Assembly: GCA_976226885.1 (NCBI GenBank)
Contig: OZ320313.1
Coordinates: forward strand, 67,642,001-67,706,000
Direction: 5' to 3'
Length of the DNA stretch: 64,000 nucleotides
From: Iphione sp. A-MEVVRFRX5
Taxonomy: Eukaryota
Part shown: positions 3,001 through 48,780 of the stretch, piece by piece
How positions within the stretch are numbered: position 1 is the first letter of the stretch
Layout: each line of letters begins with the position of its first letter
Notes under the pieces: model-generated
Told to the model about the DNA's origin: nothing
Database searches by the model: none
The model's input: the letters and a program-made list of their open reading frames with translations, nothing else
Made by a program: the position numbers and the translations under genes

Positions 3001-6000
3001 CCATTGGACTTTTCCCCAATTTGCATGCGCAGGGCCTCGTTTAACGTTCTTTAAGCGTGGGAAATAACTCTGAAGTTTCCGTGCGCATTGGTTTCAATTT
3101 GTGCCAATCTTCCTGTTCCTTGAGGAGTTCAATACCAGGAGTGGATGTTCCGTCCCTGAAACTTGAAAACTTTCGCCGGGGCCAGAGTGCATTCCAATGG
3201 CCGACAAATGAACGATGACTCACAAGCGCAGGCTGGGCGCTCTCCCTCAAGACCAGGTGGCCAAGATAAATAATTTGACTGATTTACGGGGTCAATTCTT
3301 TGAAGTGTGCTATACATATTTAACCTAGACGGAAGGCCAGCTTTGGGAGCGACCGCTCGGCAGCGCTGACGGTGTTGATGGAATCCGGGTTTCTTGGGAC
3401 ACGATATTCCCTCGGGGGCAGTGGCTACTACGCCTTGTGCCCAGCTCCAGGAGACCCCAATCCTTTGTTTCTCGCACGTCGCCGTCAACCTCAGACGTGA
3501 CAAAATTCCTCTAGCGGGGATGCAGCTATAACCCACTCGACGGCAAGCTACCGGAAGTGAACACCCGCTGCCGGCGGACCCGGGAGTAAGCGCACAAGCG
3601 CCGCCGTCACTCGCCACCATTTGCGCTGCGTGCCGAGGAGGCGGCCCACTAGCTTCTGGGTTGGTTTCTTATACTGTGTGTGCACACATACCCACGCGAC
3701 GCCCGGGGCGACTCTCATCCTTTCTAGTGTCCAGGTGATCCCTGTACAAAGACACTTTTGAAAGGAGCTGGCTCGCCGTCTGGCTGCTAGGATTTACAAT
3801 CCATTTCCGATAGAGGCTGATGGGGGTCGGTCATGTGTGCGGCCTCGTGCGAGCCAATGAAATGACACCCTCGAGCGTGGGAGCGAGTAACAAAACGATA
3901 AAACGTAAACGTAAAACGCTGATCAGAACTCGAGGCAACAAAAAAAGACAACGAAAAAAAACCTCATATTTCTATACATCGCGTAGCAAACTCAGAGGAT
4001 CTGGAAACTCTATACACACACGTGAGCTATACCTTGTGTCGACAGACTGTCATTGAAGCAAGCGCTAAGAGTAACACGAAACGGTGGTTTCATATAAGAT
4101 CAAACAGGCAAATTGCCTTCAGCCAACCTATCCCCGATGGGAGGGCAGTACAAGAGACGAAGGTCACTTGCAAGCAATCAATGAGCTCAAATGGGAGACA
4201 GAGGTCAACGTCAGAGGTGGTGCAAACAAAGGGGTTTGTATGAGGATAAGGGGCGGAAGTGGGGGTGGGGTGGGATGTTACGTTAGAAAGGTGCATACGG
4301 TGTAGACGCAAACCCCTTCTAGTGGTGTTTTCGATGTTTCACAACCTGCTGCCCGTTTTAGGGATCGTCGATAATATTGCTTTGGTATTATCCGCTCTAC
4401 TGGCGCCGCCTGCCGTCACCCACCGCGTGTGGTCGGTCTTTATTAGCCACAGCAGAGCCTCACTCTGTCCTGCGTGGGTGTGACGGGCCTCGGCCACGGA
4501 GAGCTGCTCTATATTAGATACATCAGTTATTCCTGGGCCGCTCTAGGTTAAACAAATATCCTCCGAATCCAGCCACTGCTGTGGCTGGTAATACTACAAT
4601 TAAATTTTCTCCATCACAAAGATGACATATATTTCCAATGGGAAGGGGGGGGCGGGGGGAGGGGGCGCAGGGGGAGATAATCATACAATGCTTACTCGAT
4701 TTTTGAAATGGTCTGCGCATTCTGTCATAATCCTTATGTGTAAGATCCTACTGATTCAATGAAGCATCTGAACAGCCCAGCTCGATAATCTGGTTAGATA
4801 ACAGTATTATCGGAATTCATTTTGTGCTGGAGGAACCCGTGTCGATTGATGCTAGTCATGCATTGATAATATTCTGTATGTAGCGGAGATACTCACAGCC
4901 ACCACGGCCTCCCTATTTCTGTCCGTTATAGTCGCTCCCCCAACCCCGGCTGCCCCCGCCCTCCATCTTCCCCCGCCCCCAGGCTGTACCCGGGCTGCTG
5001 GCACCCGCGGCCGTTGGTGGCAGCGGGCAGGCCTGCAGGTCTGATTAGCAGTTTCTGTGTCTGGCTTCCACCAGCAAAAGCCAGCCTGATTATGGTCCGT
5101 TCTTTTAATTCCTAAATACTGTAGGCGAACGCGGTGGCGATAAAAAGGGGAGGACCGAGCGCAGGAAGGTTACCCCTTACCCATCCCGTCCCCAATCTGA
5201 CAAGGCGAGAGGGAAAAAAACTCACTGAGCGTCGACGCCTATGTGGAGCCCTATGATCACATACTTGCGGCCGGAGGTATGATTACAAACGTTATCGACC
5301 TATTGCCAGTCGGGGGCTGTCTGGCCGTCAGAGGACCATGGCTTTTGCGTGTGATAAAAATAAATGAACTTTCGCCAGGGCATGAAAAGGTGTAAAAACC
5401 TGTCTTCCTGTTACACTGCTGGTGGATCCCACAGCAATGGCTGGATACGTACACGCTTGTGTGTGCACACATGCAAGCGCACACACTCTCACACATGGGC
5501 GGGTGCATTTTCCTGAGTTCTCTCCAAATCAAAATCAACGTATTCTTTTGAACGCTGTTCTCTTTTCGAAGGGAGGTGTAGTCTGCTCGGGTTGAGCTGC
5601 TCCGTCGCCTCTTTACATTCGCCTCGAAGTTTACCAAATTTCTTGCTGTATAACCCTTTTATTTCTAACGGTGAGCCTTGTAAATAAAACGGTGGCGCTG
5701 CGGCGACGGTTTCGAGGCCTTCCCTGCCTTTGGGTGACCGTGACGCCCATTTGCAGTTGCCTGATTTTAAGCATCACACACGTCATCGGAGCCATCAACG
5801 GCGTTAGGTACGAGAGATGGGCGACATGCAGTCAGTGGGATCAGCGTCACTGCGAAAAAATGTTTCTTCCCCTCAAATGGTCCACCTGCCAGAGAAAACA
5901 AATTAGCACATGGAAAAAAGAAGACTACCGAGAGTTAGAGCGAATTTGAAAAGGAAATTTGGGGCCATGAAAAATCTCGAAGACGAGTCATTATAACGTC

Positions 6001-7029: not shown

Positions 7030-7159
7030 NNNNNNNNNNNNNNNNNNNNNNNNNNNNNNNNNNNNNNNNNNNNNNNNNNNNNNNNNNNNNNNNNNNNNNN
7101 NNNNNNNNNNNNNNNNNNNNNNNNNNNNNNNNNNNNNNNNNNNNNNNNNNNNNNNNNNN
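7030..7159. other. Assembly gap (130 N)
   Basis: Run of N in the sequence; ORFs spanning it are artefacts. Confidence 0.99.
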
Positions 7160-9079: not shown

Positions 9080-9153
9080 CCACGAAAATGCTCACTACAG
9101 CTAACCCTGACGTGCATCGTGCTTACCTGGAACAGAAAAAAACAGAAACAGGT
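9080..9153 (-). other. Strong 3' splice site immediately followed by a 5' splice site (recursive-splice-site-like) plus 47-nt exon
   Basis: Minus strand: aatgac-cctgtttctgtttttttctgttc-CAG|GTAAGC, with 20 of 23 tract bases pyrimidine and the junction at 9127/9126. The next donor TGG|GTGAGTAC begins at 9079, defining exon 9126-9080. Confidence 0.5.
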
Positions 9154-9992: not shown

Positions 9993-12888
9993 CCAGCTCA
10001 GTCAGACAGACAAGACATCTTGATGAAGCTGACGAATGGACAACAAAAAGATCAGGCAACTTTTCAATTCGCAACACACGAAAGCAAAGTGACCTCTATA
10101 TTATTGACAAGATTTACTTTGCGTGAGAGAAAGCAGATCAGAGATGGTTAAAAGTACAAGGAGAATGCTTTTTAGAGTACCCCTGGTCTACCATACATCA
10201 CTGAAAGCAGGGAGCAATTAGGTTACTTTAGCAATACATCCTGGAGCTGACGAGAGGCCAAGTAGAGAGACCCTAAACTTAGAGTTATCGTGGTCATTAC
10301 GCTAGCCGGCCCTCAGTCTCCTGTTATGCCCAAATGGCTGGTTATCGATCCATCCAATGGTAGTGGCTGTCATGCCCATTGATCTGCTCCAACCCAACAG
10401 CCTCCTACTTCCTCTGCTAATCCCCACGACCGCCCACTTTGGTTATTACATATGCTTTTGTCTAGTTTCTGACCCCTACTGCTATTCATACCTACCAAAA
10501 TGTCTGCTTTTCTATATACCCACCTGCTGGACCAGACAAAGCTCTCCCTATCCTATTACGATAGAGTACATGTAGACGTACTCCTACGTGCTAGTGCTGA
10601 AAGTTACAGTTATCGTTATGTATCACGCGGACCGACGCTACACACGTTTTCGAAAGCTGCCATTCGGGTTAAAGGTCATGACGCTTCTAACGGCACATGC
10701 CTGGGACATCAAGGAAGGTGAGTGGAAGAAACCGACTCTTTCATGATTTTTATCTTGGAATGCCTCCTGTGGAACTTGCGCCAACCTGCTGCAGGAGGCC
10801 CCGCCCTGGAATCTGGTTAAGAAATTGCTCACCAGCTCGCCAACCATTTCGTAGCGTGGTGGCCACGGTCAGATGAAGGCGGCCAGTGTGAAGATAAATC
10901 TTCCTCGCCATCCGATTGATCCACATAAAAAGGACAGCATCACTATAGCTCCAACCCGAGGCTGCCGCAGAGTAAGGTGCTGCGTAAGAAATTACCATCC
11001 AAGACGAGATTACTTGTAGACGACGTGGGAGGGGCGCTCGCTGCCGGGTTCTGGGTTCCTGCCACAACTCGTCAACGCAGTGCTGACCTCCGAGGTACCG
11101 CGAGTTCTCGCGATATGACACCACCTCCCGTTCCTTATCTGCTATCCGTGACGTGCCTTACAGGCGCTGGTCACCGAGGGGATTTGATGTCCTCGCCGTC
11201 GCTGCGGTTTGACACACGCGTGAGGCTGTTGCGTAGAGGGAAGGAGAAGGGGTGGGCAGAGCGCCGCGACAGGGGTTAACAAGTCGGCCGACGCGCCGAC
11301 CGCCGCAACCAAGGCGACGGCGAGTAATAACCGCGACGCTCGCCGACGACGGCAGCGTCGGTATATAGGGGTCACAACGATCGCGCCCGCGTCGGCGCGC
11401 CCGGCGACTGGACAAATCATTGCTGATTGCCGGCAATCTGGAGGAGCTTCATTGGCCGGCGTCGGCCCGGGAGGAGGATAAGCTGCCTGATGGGCCACCT
11501 GATCCCCAACAGCGTGCGTCGCTTTCCCATTCAATTCCCCCGCCCACCAAACCTCTTTTTCGCGTCTGGTCCTAATCTGAAATTCCAGGCATGGTATTTA
11601 TTTATGTGTCTTTTTCTCAATGCAGTTACAGGGACTGCCCGATACATAGCTGTTATTTAATTTCTAGTACGGTTTTATTAGAAATATATCTCGTAGTACA
11701 TGTATTTGAAAGTCACAAAGTGATGTTTGGAATGTCAAGGGAAATGACTAATATCACGAACAGGTAATGAACTAACCCGATCCTAATGATACACGCTGTT
11801 GAATGTCCTTATATTTCCTTCATTAACTCTCCACGACAATTAATTCATTTCAGATGCATGAAAGCTGATGGAAGGTAGAACCACTACATATACGTATAGA
11901 TCTCAAGGGTACTCCCGAGTTCTGTCGGGATTGTCACTGATATTCGCGTTATACATGCACTTACCATACAGTGGCGGGTGGTAAAGAAGGTGAATCACCA
12001 GCATCAACACCGCCAGAAGAGGAGGAAGCCGGCAGGTGCACTGGGCTCGTGGTAATCCTTGACCGACAAACAATAAAACCGCGGCAAATCTCCACGTGTG
12101 GTGTTATTAGTGCAAACCGCGCGTCCGCTTTTCTTCCCCCCCCCCCCCCCCCACCGCTGAAACTCTGACATGGAGTCCAACCCGAAAAACGTGTTATTCA
12201 GACAAAGGATTTCTCGTCTGTTTAAAACAAAAAAATTCATGTACGAACGACAAACACGGGCGACAATTTCAATGTTTGGCGAGCCATGATAAACGATCTG
12301 CCATACGCCAGCCAATTAGACGTGGGAAATGTCCCACGCTATTTCCCCCACGGTTACTTAATAGCGTCGCGCAGGGAAGTATTTATCGAAGCACGAAATA
12401 GTGCGTTACATCTTTTTTATATGGCTTATCAGACAATCTATTTCTTTCCAATCCGTATATTTTACAACGAACTTGGATCTACTCCGAATTACTCCGAGTT
12501 CTGTTGCAGCTTATTTTCTCTCTGTGACGTTGACTGCTTCGCCGTCTGTATCTGTCTGATTAGTTATCTATCCGTCTGTCTATACACACAGACTCTACAC
12601 TGATCGAAACGAAACCAATCACGACAGCTAAAGTCACCTTCAAAGTCCAGTCACTAATGTACCGTCAAGGCTGAGCACCAAATACTGAGAGCATTTGGCC
12701 AGTAAGCATCTGTGCGCGTCTGAATTATTTGTCGATTCTTCACAGTTGATGGTCAAACGACCTAATCCTACCGGAAGAAATCAGCACAAGAATATACATG
12801 CATAACCCTGGGGACAGCGTACTCTTTGATCCCTTTCTATGAATGAGTGAGTGCATGATTAAGTAAGTGGGCAAGCCAAGAGGAGAAT

Positions 12889-20050: not shown

Positions 20051-20143
20051 ATGCGCAGAGAATACCCTGGCAGCAACTGGCTTGGTCTCATTCTTGAGAA
20101 AGTAAGAGGAAAAATACGAGCAGCAGCGCCACAGAGTGAATAA
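20051..20143 (+). CDS. 30-aa basic uORF (MRREYPGSNWLGLILEKVRGKIRAAAPQSE) whose TAA overlaps the ORF1 ATG
   Basis: ATG 20051, TAA 20141-20143, ORF1 ATG 20143-20145 (TAATG). Translation not demonstrated. Confidence 0.35.
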   Translation: MRREYPGSNWLGLILEKVRGKIRAAAPQSE

Positions 20144-20832
20144 TGTATGAAGTTGATCCAAACTCTATCCCTCTGCCGGTTCGATTTTTCACGGACTCAC
20201 ATGGAAAGAATCTACATCGTGGACTCATTCGAAATGGGCTCAATTGCCCCTTCCACATATTTCCAGGAGCAAATATAAAAAGGTTGGTTAGGGAAATAAC
20301 TTCTCTTGACTTTCATGACCGTCCGATGTATGTTGTCCTAATTGTAGGCACTAACGACTTGACACGACTTGAACGAAATGCATTACTCCCAAATGGTATG
20401 AGAGGGAGACAAATCTCAGTTACTGAAATTGATCCCTATGTAAACAGTGAAGCTTATATGAGCAAAATTCATGATGCCTATGAAATTATCTCTAAACATC
20501 TACCATATACTCATGTAATTTTCTCTCAACTTTTCGCACCTGATTTGTCGAAATACAATTCTCACATAAGTGGTGGAGTCATTTCAGATACTGGTGACCC
20601 GTCGCAGAGGGCATTGAATCGTGCTGCACACATAATAAATAGGCAAATCATCTCGTTCAATGGGCGCCATGGCCAACCTACGCCAATGACAGGATGCATT
20701 ATCCACGGCCGTTCAAATGGGCGTGATACGAACAAGATGAACAAGTACATTGATGGGTGTCACCTGAACTCACAAGGTCGGCTTGAAATGGTTACATCAT
20801 TGGTGAAGTTTATCGGACGATTGGGAATTTGA
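20143..20832 (+). CDS. LINE ORF1p, SGNH/GDSL-type esterase (229 aa)
   Basis: All four SGNH blocks present: FFTDS(19)HG, FPG(42)AN, IVGTN(71)D, D(204)GCH(207). In-frame TGA at 20137-20139 limits it upstream. Confidence 0.85.
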   Translation: MYEVDPNSIPLPVRFFTDSHGKNLHRGLIRNGLNCPFHIFPGANIKRLVREITSLDFHDRPMYVVLIVGTNDLTRLERNALLPNGMRGRQISVTEIDPYVNSEAYMSKIHDAYEIISKHLPYTHVIFSQLFAPDLSKYNSHISGGVISDTGDPSQRALNRAAHIINRQIISFNGRHGQPTPMTGCIIHGRSNGRDTNKMNKYIDGCHLNSQGRLEMVTSLVKFIGRLGI

Positions 20833-21336
20833 TACCCAATATGTGTATCATGTGATCTGCAGCATCTATTGATACCGTAACTTGCAAGACATGTGTTAAG
20901 ACTCAACTATTACCGGCAACACCAAACACATGGACAGTTAGTTAAATAACTTTTGACTGGTATCCTGGTCCAATTGTGAGTATACTCGATAACAACAAAT
21001 ATATGAACAGTTACCAGCTTATCCTTACCAAGGTATCTTATTTTTACCATTGAGATTGACGTTGTAATCAAAATGTTCACCAGCCATCATATGCCCGTTA
21101 TATTCGTAAGACTAATTGTATTACAGCAGAACGCCAATGTGAAATACTCTAATGATATCCCATTGTATTTCTCATGCCTATCAGCTGCTCACTGTCCCAC
21201 TATCATAGCATATGCCTCTCTGCTCTTTGCCGTGATATACTACTCCCGGTGACTGTACAAACTTGTCAGAAGTATGAACTGGCTGAGCAGGAACAAATGT
21301 CATAATGCCAACAATTCTCAGTAGCGACACAATAGT

Positions 21337-21562
21337 AGTGTCTCCTCTATGAGACACTCATCAATATATCCAAACTCATTCTCAATAACACCCTGGTCTC
21401 CTCTATTGAGACCGGTGACAATTATTGATTGAACTCCTCTTTGAGTTCCCGACAGTAATGTCACAAATAAAAAGAATGCTACCTACTGAGTTTTCTTCTG
21501 GTTAAATGGCAATTCCCCCTCGGCATGCTAGCATGCTAGCATATTAGCTCCTTCTGCTAGTA
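21337..21562 (+). other. Array of 3-4 stem-loops with pyrimidine loops in the LINE inter-ORF spacer
   Basis: AGTGTCTC-ctctat-GAGACACT (21337-58), CTGGTCTC-ctctatt-GAGACCGG (21393-415), GAACTC-ctcttt-GAGTTC (21431-48), and weaker TATTAGC-tccttct-GCTAGTA (21542-62). Confidence 0.6.
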
Positions 21563-21690
21563 ATACCACGTTATGTCTTACGTGGTATTGAGTTGTTGTA
21601 CAAATATTGGTGTTTGTGTTGTTTGTTTTGTTCATGATACTCATGAAAATAGTGGCCAAAACATTTCAAATAGTATCTTATTGATGAGTA

Positions 21691-24516
21691 ATGTCTACTG
21701 CTAACAAAGATGGCACCTCTCTTAGTATAATGCATTTGAATATCCGAAGTCTGAAACCTAAAATGCTTGAATGTAGCCACTTGGTAAGCACTCTAAATCC
21801 TGATATAATGATCTTCACGGAATCATGGTTGCATACTTATATTCCGAATGAACAGATAAATCTGGATGATTATAGCCTGTTGCGATATGATAGGAAATAT
21901 GGCAAAGGAGGCGGTATCATTGTTTATTTTAAATCGTTTGTACCTCTGGAAGGTGATACGTGGAAAGACCTAAATACAAGCTGTCTGGACAGTGAGATAT
22001 CAATTACTAGCATCACACCGGCATGTGGCAATAACATCATTCTAATTGCTATTTACAGACCCCCCAAAGGAAATGTTACAAAATTTATTGATCAGTTAGA
22101 CATTATACTGGAGAGAGTTTCCCAAAACGGGGAACGTATTATACTCATAGGTGATTTCAACATAAACTTTCTTGATATTGCAAACTCAAACAGATTTGCA
22201 TTATTACATCTAGCAAGAAACTTTGAACTGACTCAACTAGTTAAGATCCCAACCCGATGTAGCTCCAGTACTAATTCATGTATTGATTTGATATTAACAA
22301 ATGAAACTGAAAACAAAAGTGCCAAGGTGATCCCTACATTCATTAGTGATCATAATGCAATATCCCTGAAGATAAATTTAACCACTGCTACTCAATCAAG
22401 ATCCCCGTTCGTATACAGGACTTGGGCTAAAGCTAACAGTGATAACTTTCAAGAATTAGTAGACAGGTTTGACTGGTCTCCTCTTTATACCATTCGAGAC
22501 CCTGACCTAAAGACAAATACTTATATAAGAATTCTGATTGAGATGCTGAACATTGTCTCCCCCAAAAAGGTAAGTAAAAATATTCACAAACGGGACACTT
22601 GGTTATCTATTAGCACAAGATGTTTGATTAACCAAAAGAATCAAGCATATAAAAAGGCAATTAAACTGAAGTCCCCATCCCTATTTACCAAAGCTAAAAA
22701 ACTTAACAACCTATGCAAAGAAGCACTAAGAAAGGATAGATCGGATTATGTGAATGTTCAGATTGCTGAAAACAAACAAAGTCCCAAGAAGTATTGGAAT
22801 GTGCTAAAAGGTATCCTTGGTAAAAACAACAAGTCGTTACCCATTAGCCTAAAGGAAAATGGCAAAGTATTAACAACTGATGTTGCAGTGAATAAATTAA
22901 ACCAACACTTTGCTACAATAGGCATATCCGAATGTGACCCCGATAACAATCTAACCACTGATTTCGTCAAAAAAAGTAATACCACTTTTTCAATAAACAC
23001 GGTTAACTTAGATTGTATTGCAAAAATAGTAAAAAATCTGAATGATTCAAAACCGTCTGGAATCCCTGAAGTCTCATTGAAAATATTAAAACCGATTCTA
23101 TTTATGACTACAAAGCAACTAACTGAAGTGATCAACACATGCCTGGAACAAAACACCTTTCCTATTATTTGGAAATCAGCCTACATTACACCACTGTATA
23201 AAAACAAAGGCAGTCGTTTTGATGCTAACTCTAATCGTCCTATAAGTATTCTTCCGGCAATGAGTAAAATTCTTGAGAGAGTCATATCAGATCAGATGAC
23301 TGAATATATTGAATACAATAATATCCTAACTGACTGTCAATATGGTTTTAGAAAAGGCAAATCAACAATAGACGCAATCAATGATGTCCTACATTACATC
23401 CACGAAGGAATAAATAACAATATGGTAGTAGGAGCGGTTTTTGTCGATTACCAAAAAGCCTTCGACAGCATTAATCATGGGATATTACTGAAGAAACTTA
23501 AGACAATGGGATTTAATGCCGCCATTCCTTTATTGCATTCATATCTAAAAGACAGAACAATAAGAACAAAAATTGGATCCGAAATTTCTGATGCACTCCC
23601 TATGAGTATTGGGGTTCCTCAAGGGAGTATTTTAGGCCCCCTCTTATTCAGTCTTTTTATTAATGATGCTATCTCAATCTTAAAACATACACATAACGTC
23701 ATGTACGCTGACGACACTATCTTGCTTATAGCAGGTAAGAGTCCAGCCTTAATTGAAAAACAATTAGCGGATGACGTCAACTGTCTTTCTGAATGGTGTA
23801 AAGTTAATGGAATTTGTATAAATGCCTCAAAAACTGAAACCATGCTCTTCTGTCATAAAAGAAGCAAATACAAAGACACCATCTTAAAAATCATGATTGA
23901 CCAAACCTTAGTTAAACACACAAGACAATATAAATACTTAGGCTTCACCTTGGACCAGCATCTAGACCTAAACCTTGAGCTTTCGCATAAAGTGTCTAAG
24001 TCATATCTAATAATGAACTTAATCCGCCACACAGCCAGAATCAATAGAAAACTAGCTATTCAGGTCTTAAAAACATATTTTATTCCTCTGTTAGAGTATG
24101 GGCTTGGTTCAGTTCATACCTACAACAGTAACATGTTCAGAAAATTGGAGCGACAGTTAGAAAAGGCTGTTAGGCTTGCAACTGGAAACTTCTCACAAAG
24201 CTTCAACACTCTTTGTATCAAATTAAAAATAATGCCTCTTGAATTGAGGAGTCAATACTTCTCACTATGCACATTTCAGAAACATCTGTATCAAACATAT
24301 ATTGTACAAAAATCAAAAACTCGTTTTAGAAAATGCTTGCTGCCACTGACGATGCCAAAGAAATGCTCCTATCGTGCAGACCCTCTGTTTATGGCTACGT
24401 CCCTCTGGAATAAGTTAGACGAACATCTGAAGGTTCCAAATAAGGAACAGTTCAAAAAACACCTGAAAGAGCAAATGTTTCGAAGGTTAATGAAAGAGAA
24501 CTGGAGAGTGTCATAA
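21691..24516 (+). CDS. LINE ORF2p: apurinic-like endonuclease + reverse transcriptase (941 aa)
   Basis: APE motifs HLNIRSL, FTESWL, GGGII, IYRPP, GDFN, IDLILT, SDH. RT motifs RPISILP, QYGFRKGKST, DYQKAFD, GVPQGSILGPLLF, YADD (23704-23715), KYLG. C-terminal LWNKL..FKKHLK typical of the CR1/L2 group. Confidence 0.97.
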   Translation: MSTANKDGTSLSIMHLNIRSLKPKMLECSHLVSTLNPDIMIFTESWLHTYIPNEQINLDDYSLLRYDRKYGKGGGIIVYFKSFVPLEGDTWKDLNTSCLDSEISITSITPACGNNIILIAIYRPPKGNVTKFIDQLDIILERVSQNGERIILIGDFNINFLDIANSNRFALLHLARNFELTQLVKIPTRCSSSTNSCIDLILTNETENKSAKVIPTFISDHNAISLKINLTTATQSRSPFVYRTWAKANSDNFQELVDRFDWSPLYTIRDPDLKTNTYIRILIEMLNIVSPKKVSKNIHKRDTWLSISTRCLINQKNQAYKKAIKLKSPSLFTKAKKLNNLCKEALRKDRSDYVNVQIAENKQSPKKYWNVLKGILGKNNKSLPISLKENGKVLTTDVAVNKLNQHFATIGISECDPDNNLTTDFVKKSNTTFSINTVNLDCIAKIVKNLNDSKPSGIPEVSLKILKPILFMTTKQLTEVINTCLEQNTFPIIWKSAYITPLYKNKGSRFDANSNRPISILPAMSKILERVISDQMTEYIEYNNILTDCQYGFRKGKSTIDAINDVLHYIHEGINNNMVVGAVFVDYQKAFDSINHGILLKKLKTMGFNAAIPLLHSYLKDRTIRTKIGSEISDALPMSIGVPQGSILGPLLFSLFINDAISILKHTHNVMYADDTILLIAGKSPALIEKQLADDVNCLSEWCKVNGICINASKTETMLFCHKRSKYKDTILKIMIDQTLVKHTRQYKYLGFTLDQHLDLNLELSHKVSKSYLIMNLIRHTARINRKLAIQVLKTYFIPLLEYGLGSVHTYNSNMFRKLERQLEKAVRLATGNFSQSFNTLCIKLKIMPLELRSQYFSLCTFQKHLYQTYIVQKSKTRFRKCLLPLTMPKKCSYRADPLFMATSLWNKLDEHLKVPNKEQFKKHLKEQMFRRLMKENWRVS

Positions 24517-32768: not shown

Positions 32769-32820
32769 CTGACCTGTCGGTAGTTTACAGCGCGATTCTC
32801 ACCTGGAGAGGGGGGACGCA
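32769..32820 (-). other. AG|GT (recursive-site-like) junction
   Basis: Minus: pyrimidine tract (C-run then tctc) ending CAG|GTGAGA at 32803/32802; downstream donors CAG|GTCAGG (32773) and CAG|GTGTGT (32768). Confidence 0.25.
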
Positions 32821-46141: not shown

Positions 46142-46470
46142 NNNNNNNNNNNNNNNNNNNNNNNNNNNNNNNNNNNNNNNNNNNNNNNNNNNNNNNNNNN
46201 NNNNNNNNNNNNNNNNNNNNNNNNNNNNNNNNNNNNNNNNNNNNNNNNNNNNNNNNNNNNNNNNNNNNNNNNNNNNNNNNNNNNNNNNNNNNNNNNNNNN
46301 NNNNNNNNNNNNNNNNNNNNNNNNNNNNNNNNNNNNNNNNNNNNNNNNNNNNNNNNNNNNNNNNNNNNNNNNNNNNNNNNNNNNNNNNNNNNNNNNNNNN
46401 NNNNNNNNNNNNNNNNNNNNNNNNNNNNNNNNNNNNNNNNNNNNNNNNNNNNNNNNNNNNNNNNNNNNNN
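46142..46470. other. Assembly gap (329 N)
   Basis: Run of N in the sequence. Confidence 0.99.
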
Positions 46471-47338: not shown

Positions 47339-48726
47339 TTCACCTTCATGTATCAGACCCGGCTTATCTTTCCACACAGGCCACGCCCAACGGCCTTCCC
47401 CCCACATTGTAGATATTAGTGCTTCTCATAAAAACCTCAAACTTCCAGATACGTGCGCGCTGGGATTGATCAAATCTAACACGTGGCGCTTGATGAATAC
47501 AAAGGGATTATTAATGGGAAGCAGGCGGTGATAAATGTGAAGTTTGATGAGAGAAAATAAAAGATGCATTCCTATAAATGTTTCCCATCAAACTATGGGG
47601 GGGGGGGGTATCAACACAGATGTTCGGTGATTCGAAAATTTGAAGCTGAATTAGTGATTTGTTGAGGGAGCGGCGACGGCCTGCGGGGCACGCGGGGGAA
47701 TCTACAACTACCGCCTGTCATATTAAGAATCAGCGCCTTTGGCCAGAAGACAAGGCCTTATCACATCCAGAATGAGACTCGGCTCAAGGGTGAGGAGGCG
47801 AGAGATGTGTGTGTCACTGCAGGACTACGACCTGTCCCCGGAAGCCATCTGTAGAGGAAGCTTGGGCGCAGACAATGCCTGACCTCAAGGTCAGACCCTA
47901 CATCCTTCCGCCCTGACCAGCCCCTCCCATCGCAACCCCAACATTGGTTTAACTCAACCAGAAACTATTCGATGTTTACAGGTCCGGGCTGTTTTCACGC
48001 CCCAATGTACAGCAGCCACAGCAACGGCCGACAAACAAATTAAAATGGAATTTAGAAAAAAAAAACGGAGACGGTGCTACACAAAGCACTTGAACTTGCC
48101 ACAAAGCCTATGTTTTCAATGTGTAATTCCTGTCATATTTGCAGATACAAGAGATAACAACTAGGATCATCTCACAGCGTCTGTCTGCTCTTCTTATCAG
48201 GAAGAAAGTGGACGCCACAGAGGTTAATTGAACAAGCCGACCTGTGCACTGTCCGCTAGAAAAGTTCCGATAGGTCAAAATGGCTGAGTGGAAGAGAGGC
48301 CGTGCCCGCTGCCATTCCAAACGCTCACCTCGACCCCCTGGCATAGGCCCATAATTCCCACCTGCAGGACTGCAAAAAACAGTGCCTTTTCCATTTGTAT
48401 CGTGTACATCCAGAAGGAACCAGTCTATTACATGTATATATTACATATCAAAAACGTGTTTTTTCCAATTTATTATGTGCAACACACAACTAAAATACGG
48501 ACGTCTCGAAGAAGGTCATCAGAAATACAATCCGAATGGGACGAATAGCTTGGCGTACAACTGTGTGCATCAATGTCTGCTCCATCTTACATTAATCATG
48601 TATGTTGTGGAAATATATCAAACATGAGATTAACATTCTCAGTTTTGTCTTTTCAAGCCGAAGGCAGTCTTAAAGTTACATGGGTATTTGCCGTCGACGG
48701 TCCTGTGATAAACATACCGTACTCAC

Positions 48727-48780
48727 CGAGTTGCCACAAAGGAATTTGGAAGTACATACCTGCAAAGATTAAAGATACCA
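48727..48780 (-). other. AG|GT (recursive-site-like) junction with 33-nt exon
   Basis: Minus: tatctttaatctttgCAG|GTATGT at 48760/48759; strong donor TCG|GTGAGTAC begins at 48726. Confidence 0.35.

Follow-up and report, generated by a model that had tools for sequence, protein, structure and literature searches.

The junction 9127|9126 on the minus strand of the 64,000-nucleotide stretch of DNA analysed here (the window) is predicted to be a recursive splice site, or ratchet point, followed by a 47-nt cryptic RS-exon, within the very long 5' intron that a transcription unit on the minus strand would have here. We assign this reading a probability of about 0.5, and the host would most likely be a type-III classical cadherin gene located downstream. 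Among the explanations weighed, which included a functionless chance motif and an ordinary small exon, it was the best supported; it is favored because of an excess of similar modules on one strand, a cadherin gene on that strand without detectable 5' exons, a long conserved intron ahead of the first detectable exon of that gene, and a genome-wide clustering of ratchet motifs. Throughout, negative positions are counted from the start of the window toward lower coordinates.

The first-pass annotation had described a branch-like ATGAC, a pyrimidine tract, a CAG joined directly to GTAAGC, and a second donor; direct reading of the minus strand together with a script count recovered all of these elements in the same places. 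The branch-point-like ATGAC occupies 9156-9152; the A at 9153, which is the candidate branch nucleotide, lies 26 nt 5' of the 3' splice site. The ATGAC is followed by a polypyrimidine tract of 23 nt (9152-9130, 20 of 23 positions pyrimidines) and by the 3' splice-site CAG (9129-9127), and the AG dinucleotide is absent between approximately 9192 and this CAG. TT is found at -5/-6 before the 3' splice site, a feature of 99.5% of fly ratchet points (bioRxiv 10.1101/006163). Splice sites were scored with approximate weight tables of our own, modeled on published metazoan frequencies and distinct from MaxEntScan. By these tables, the acceptor reached 15.8 bits; it was the strongest acceptor from a promoter-like island upstream of the site down to -5 kb, and it outscored the likely acceptors of 13 cadherin exons of the neighboring gene.

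The ratchet donor GTAAGC (9126-9121) is fused directly to this acceptor. It scored 11.3 bits in combination with an upstream exon ending in CAG, 9.3 bits with CTG, and 5.6 bits with CCT, to be compared with 8.8 bits for the donor of the RS-exon, TGG|GTGAGTAC (9079-9072); the actual upstream exon end was not located. The cadherin exon at -103.9 kb probably uses the same GTAAGC hexamer as its donor. The candidate RS-exon between the two donors spans 9126-9080, and its length of 47 nt (2 mod 3) and the stops in two of its three frames agreed between the earlier description and the script count. No stop interrupts the third frame, in which an ATG is present at 9117-9115 with an A at -3. RS-exons are expected to break the reading frame and to have their own donor less than 100 nt downstream, and both properties were found for the 47-nt segment with its GTGAGT donor. 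The anatomy thus fits a ratchet point with a cryptic RS-exon, as had been proposed, and further support comes from the indirect context described below; the 5'-UTR or poison microexon that had been offered as an alternative is a serious but less probable rival.

The strength of the site was assessed in a contiguous sequence of 324 kb (the window plus 260 kb at lower coordinates), in which every AG|GT was scored. With an acceptor of 15.8 bits and a fused donor of 11.3 bits, it ranked first of 2,451 AGGT sites on both strands. A fifth-order Markov null trained on the minus strand gave 0.022 expected fusions of such strength per 168 kb. This amounts to approximately 0.13 per Mb of strand, or about a dozen in ~90 Mb of strand. 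With the donor at +47 included, the composite score was 35.9, a value reached by none of the simulated sites in 30 Mb of Markov sequence. At the scale of the genome, chance would still yield some hundreds of equally strong fusions without a second donor, and complete modules in numbers below ~80; the motif on its own is therefore rare but not proof. The plain pattern CAGGTRAGY was unremarkable in the window (two observed versus 1.7 expected). We consider it unlikely that the site is a functionless chance motif in untranscribed or antisense DNA: the null leaves room for hundreds of bare fusions per genome, but the full module with its second donor was unreached in simulation even though the null had been trained on the same strand.

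Further evidence on this point was obtained from similar modules in the surrounding sequence. In the 168 kb from -104 kb to +64 kb, a region whose limits and thresholds were picked after the data had been seen, the minus strand carried five modules with a composite score of ≥28 versus 0.57 expected (Poisson p = 3e-4) and four with a score of ≥30 versus 0.16 expected. The minus strand lay above the null at each threshold, although this null was trained on the minus strand itself, whereas the plus strand contained no module of ≥28 and agreed with the null at all thresholds. Likewise, when the 12 top-scoring sites of each strand were compared, downstream donors of ≥7 bits accompanied five on the minus strand and none on the plus strand. 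Both differences argue against a chance origin. The strand bias is nevertheless partly compositional, since acceptor-like tracts were 2.2 times more common on the minus strand of the 324 kb, and to this extent it is also compatible with chance. On the minus strand, T exceeded A in 30 of 33 10-kb bins (A over T on the plus strand). Long human introns are known to show such a T-over-A asymmetry on their sense strand, and replication could cause the same.

The modules with scores of ≥28 are located at 48361, 32802, 9126, -16,733, and -54,104, and weaker minus-strand modules were found at 48759 and -94,176. In the second module (32769-32802, minus strand), the fused site is CCAG|GTGAGA, the segment measures 34 nt, and its donor scored 9.9 bits (composite score 30.0); in the third (48329-48361, minus strand), the fused site is GCAG|GTGGGA, the segment measures 33 nt, and its donor scored 10.4 bits (composite score 30.1). 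Both are unique. In the fourth, weaker module (48727-48759, minus strand), TTGCAG|GTATGT opens a 33-nt segment that is followed by GTGAGTAC, at a composite score of 27.3. All modules lie in unique sequence. TT was present at -5/-6 in five of the seven, the fused donor was stronger than the donor of the short exon in six of the seven, and the short exons were 33-69 nt in length; these traits match those published for recursive sites. The spacing of the modules would give pieces of roughly 15-40 kb, a size that falls among those reported for recursive segments in flies, which measure 2.6-63.6 kb (mean 18 kb) in introns with one to six ratchet points. Close to the module at -16,733, an interspersed repeat of about 100 bp (L004:3366-3468) ends approximately 100 nt before the module without covering it; more than 1,200 first-look candidates for this repeat were counted in the genome, with copies that are 89-96% identical.

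Genome-wide, the evidence pointed in two directions. A strict motif (eight pyrimidines, N, YAG|GTRAGT) occurred 426 times versus 328 times for the reversed motif used as control, an excess of only 1.3-fold that weighs against the ratchet reading and in favor of a chance origin. The arrangement of the matches, in contrast, was coherent with respect to strand: among the 100 places listed, 19 of 19 neighbor pairs within 100 kb shared the same strand (p = 2e-6), and among the matches listed for contig 1, 12 same-strand neighbor pairs were counted versus 2.6 expected. This same-strand clustering is the pattern that functional ratchet points in giant introns would yield, and it speaks against a chance motif. 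Among the matches listed, clusters of three to six same-strand perfect motifs with a spacing of 20-100 kb were seen, on the plus strand at C1:129248029-129548902 (at least six sites) and C1:132867922-132983846 (at least four sites), and on the minus strand at C2:11388703-11519478 and C2:19098182-19171139. Such clusters make it a strong possibility that giant introns at other places in the genome are also spliced recursively.

The gene most likely to host the site was identified by domain and profile matches, which revealed cadherin-repeat exons on the minus strand from -103.7 to -132.5 kb. Beyond the repeats, DE-cadherin Ig-like, laminin G, and EGF domains were found, together with the catenin-binding cadherin cytoplasmic region (PF01049, 6e-30). 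Judged by this domain content, the architecture of the multi-exon minus-strand gene is that of an invertebrate type-III classical cadherin. Its most 5' exon found, at about -103,746 to -103,932, is located 113 kb downstream of 9127|9126 on the same strand and opens with the final strand of a cadherin repeat and the linker behind it. As the first detectable exon thus starts in the middle of a repeat, at least one coding exon must lie further upstream. The presence of a same-strand gene without its 5' exons downstream of the site also weighs against a chance motif.

Searches of the 168 kb above -103.6 kb for the missing upstream exon with a gene-specific HMM, linker and calcium-site motifs, and tblastn with upstream ORFs of relatives were negative; the place of the site within a cadherin intron is therefore, like transcription across the site and its use in splicing, one that we infer. 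An exhaustive profile search with the cadherin exon retrieved only giant Fat/Dachsous-type proteins at 30-37% identity, by which the 5' end could not be located, and in a search of PDB sequences the cadherin exons were nearest to CELSR1, without a positional match. Between the cadherin gene and the site, no other minus-strand gene was detectable with Pfam, the only match being a Crypton-like element (L004:5328-6987, minus strand) approximately 14 kb below the start of the window. This element comprises a 402-aa ORF with a DUF3504 and a phage-integrase (tyrosine recombinase) domain and a weak match to QRICH1, and a further ORF of 135 aa precedes it.

With the first detectable cadherin exon as query, matches of 67-93% identity were obtained from 24 relatives, and the exon boundary at its start was common to all of them. 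Five relative loci were compared over up to 10 kb around the called gene and proved to be orthologous, containing exons matching those at -103.8, -105.5, and -112.2 to -118.3 kb in the same order. In each of the five, the intron before the first detectable exon exceeded 9-10 kb, and no conserved exon was found in the 9-10 kb upstream of this exon. A long intron ahead of the first detectable exon therefore appears to be a conserved trait of this cadherin gene, although most of the downstream introns in two of the relatives (L031 and L032) are only about 0.1-1.3 kb in length. Exons aside, the 10-kb flanks of the relatives contained no element conserved with one another or with the DNA studied here. 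As these introns cannot be aligned with those of the present genome, a conserved ratchet island would be informative. In the flanks of all five loci, the best fused site on the sense strand scored higher than the best on the antisense strand, with acceptor plus donor sums of up to 21.5 and of ≥20.6 in three loci, a bias that lends weak support to the ratchet reading. In one relative, the orthologous cadherin exon appears to open with GTAAGA right after the acceptor (L029:10017), in which case it would represent an expressed exon with a donor-like start.

According to the proposed mechanism, the very strong acceptor and the GTGAGT donor would mark the 47-nt segment as an exon. Joining of an upstream exon to this segment would rebuild a 5' splice site from the exon end and GTAAGC, and use of the rebuilt donor would then remove the 47 nt along with the next stretch of the intron. 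The modules at 48.8, 48.4, 32.8, -16.7, -54.1, and -94.2 kb would similarly cut the intron into pieces of ~15-40 kb. At the 47-nt segment, the rebuilt donor is predicted to compete with the GTGAGT donor: after an exon end of CAG or CTG it would prevail (11.3 or 9.3 versus 8.8 bits) and the 47 nt would be removed, whereas after the CCT end of a candidate first exon at 11.2 kb it would be the weaker of the two (5.6 versus 8.8 bits) and the 47 nt would be retained. Retention would introduce an upstream ATG or, if the segment lies between coding exons, a +2 frameshift. The frame of the ATG in the 47-nt segment ends in phase 2, and the next known cadherin exon needs phase 1. As a tentative extension, the cadherin 5' intron of more than 110-150 kb might contain a chain of at least four, perhaps seven, ratchet points, and the module next to an internal promoter might act as a switch, by which the 47-nt exon with its ATG would be kept only in transcripts from that promoter.

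The promoter considered in this extension is also central to the remaining alternative, in which the 47-nt segment is an ordinary small exon, constitutive or alternative and probably exon 2 of a 5'-UTR, belonging to a transcript that starts in a CpG-rich CCAAT/TATA island ~2.2 kb upstream. Two variants of this alternative were considered, a chance GTAAGC at the start of the exon and an expressed RS-exon that is normally kept. The promoter-like island (10801-11600, GC 0.63, 62 CpG per 500 bp), with a presumed minus-strand orientation, lies about 2 kb upstream of the site in the minus-strand sense and has the highest CpG density in the 324 kb. On the minus strand, it contains a CCAAT (11455-11451) 88 nt before a TATATA (11367-11362), followed by 245 nt free of ATG (11345 to 11100) and accompanied by candidate donors at 11161, 10832, and 10523. 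TATATA is a palindrome, and the orientation of the island therefore hangs mainly on the position of CCAAT, which limits the support it gives to an ordinary exon. Weaker islands were observed at -19.3 to -18.6 kb and at -92.0 to -91.5 kb, and the CpG islands may represent alternative promoters.

Several features of this arrangement suit an ordinary exon, and the 5'-UTR or poison microexon suggested in the first-pass annotation gains some support from it. Downstream of the island, no other acceptor comes close in strength to that at 9126. The nearest candidate donor, CCT|GTAAGG at 11161, would leave the CCT end for which the competition model (5.6 versus 8.8 bits) predicts inclusion of the 47 nt. 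A start in the island would result in a first intron segment of ~2.0 kb, which would suit an ordinary second exon equally well and is below the smallest fly segment of 2.6 kb, a point against the ratchet reading. Furthermore, annotated RS-exons that are kept greatly outnumber cryptic ones in deuterostomes, according to the literature. Against these points, the fused donor is as strong as the real donors of the neighboring gene, modules of the same layout occur on the same strand both upstream and downstream of the island and are left unexplained by a single exon, and no coding homology was detected for the 47 nt or for nearby ORFs with Pfam. On balance, an ordinary exon is improbable, slightly more so than a chance motif.

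Two other candidates were rejected, a transposon-borne motif because the sequence surrounding the site (600 bp) occurs only once in the genome (1.18 Gb, 89 contigs), and a plus-strand coding exon at the site because no Pfam match was obtained for it in a search that covered plus-strand ORFs of ≥64 aa (150 of 157, plus two LINE ORFs searched separately).

The ratchet reading was compared with the systems in which recursive splicing has been documented by RNA evidence, mainly Drosophila and vertebrates. Ratchet points with cryptic RS-exons are known from the Drosophila genes Ubx, kuz, and luna (Hatton 1998, Burnette 2005, Duff 2015, Joseph 2018/2021). The present site shares with them the fused acceptor-donor, the prominent pyrimidine tract, the TT at -5/-6, and a frame-breaking cryptic exon of ~50 nt that has a donor of its own within 100 nt, and the predicted intron shares the presence of several sites per long intron and segments of tens of kb. 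It differs in that site use, constitutive recognition, and conservation have been shown in flies, whereas the site described here is a prediction from sequence, and also in the short first segment if transcription starts at the nearby island. With CpG observed/expected ratios of mostly 0.5-1.3 and a genome of 1.18 Gb, the host animal seems to belong to neither the insects nor the vertebrates and is in this respect unlike both documented systems.

In vertebrates, RS-exons occur in long first introns of the cell-adhesion genes CADM1/2, NCAM, and OPCML (Sibley 2015, Blazquez 2018). A long cell-adhesion host gene would be common to these cases and the present one, as would the position of the site in the 5' region and an outcome that is predicted to hinge on competition between the rebuilt donor and that of the RS-exon. 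Because transcripts that kept the 47 nt would gain a frameshift or an upstream ATG, the site could check transcripts from alternative promoters; unlike this putative quality-control role, the vertebrate RS-exons are supported by RNA data. A poison or 5'-UTR cassette microexon would likewise be short, not a multiple of three, with stops in two frames and good splice sites, but it does not require a start that matches the donor consensus, and a same-strand chain of similar modules would not be expected of it.

A literature search on recursive splicing in marine invertebrate taxa retrieved nothing relevant, and the recursive site proposed here is a well-supported prediction rather than a demonstration. 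Use of this site and its sister modules in splicing would mean that fly-style multi-step removal of giant introns also takes place in another animal lineage, and on a classical cadherin gene. If the prediction holds, the donor-competition model could also be tested cleanly at this locus, where a ratchet point with an ATG-bearing decoy exon would have an alternative promoter 2 kb upstream.

With regard to other features of the region, the search of stop-to-stop ORFs on both strands of the window with Pfam, which on the minus strand covered ORFs of ≥50 aa over 1-20 kb and of ≥55 aa over 20-64 kb, identified only a LINE and no coding exons near the site, and Rfam gave no matches over 1-20 kb. Within the window, masked runs of N are present at 7030-7159 and 46142-46470. 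The LINE is an intact-looking non-LTR retrotransposon on the plus strand (20143-24516), antisense to the proposed minus-strand unit, with an ORF of 229 aa that had no Pfam match, followed by an ORF of 941 aa that comprises endonuclease and reverse transcriptase (21.7-24.5 kb). An LTR-retrotransposon-like block on the plus strand (L018:8211 to L017:5337, -172 to -155 kb) has ORFs of 235-706 aa and coincides with the strongest local GC and AT skew. ORFs on the minus strand that match B-box and RanBP-type zinc fingers (L023:1374-2327 and 4738-5205), at a distance of approximately 235 kb below the window, probably belong to a separate gene. Finally, many single-frame stretches of 700-1,900 aa full of cadherin repeats were observed at C10:62.4-66.8 Mb, C10:84-92 Mb, and C2:50.8-51.9 Mb, which suggests large arrays of protocadherin-like genes.
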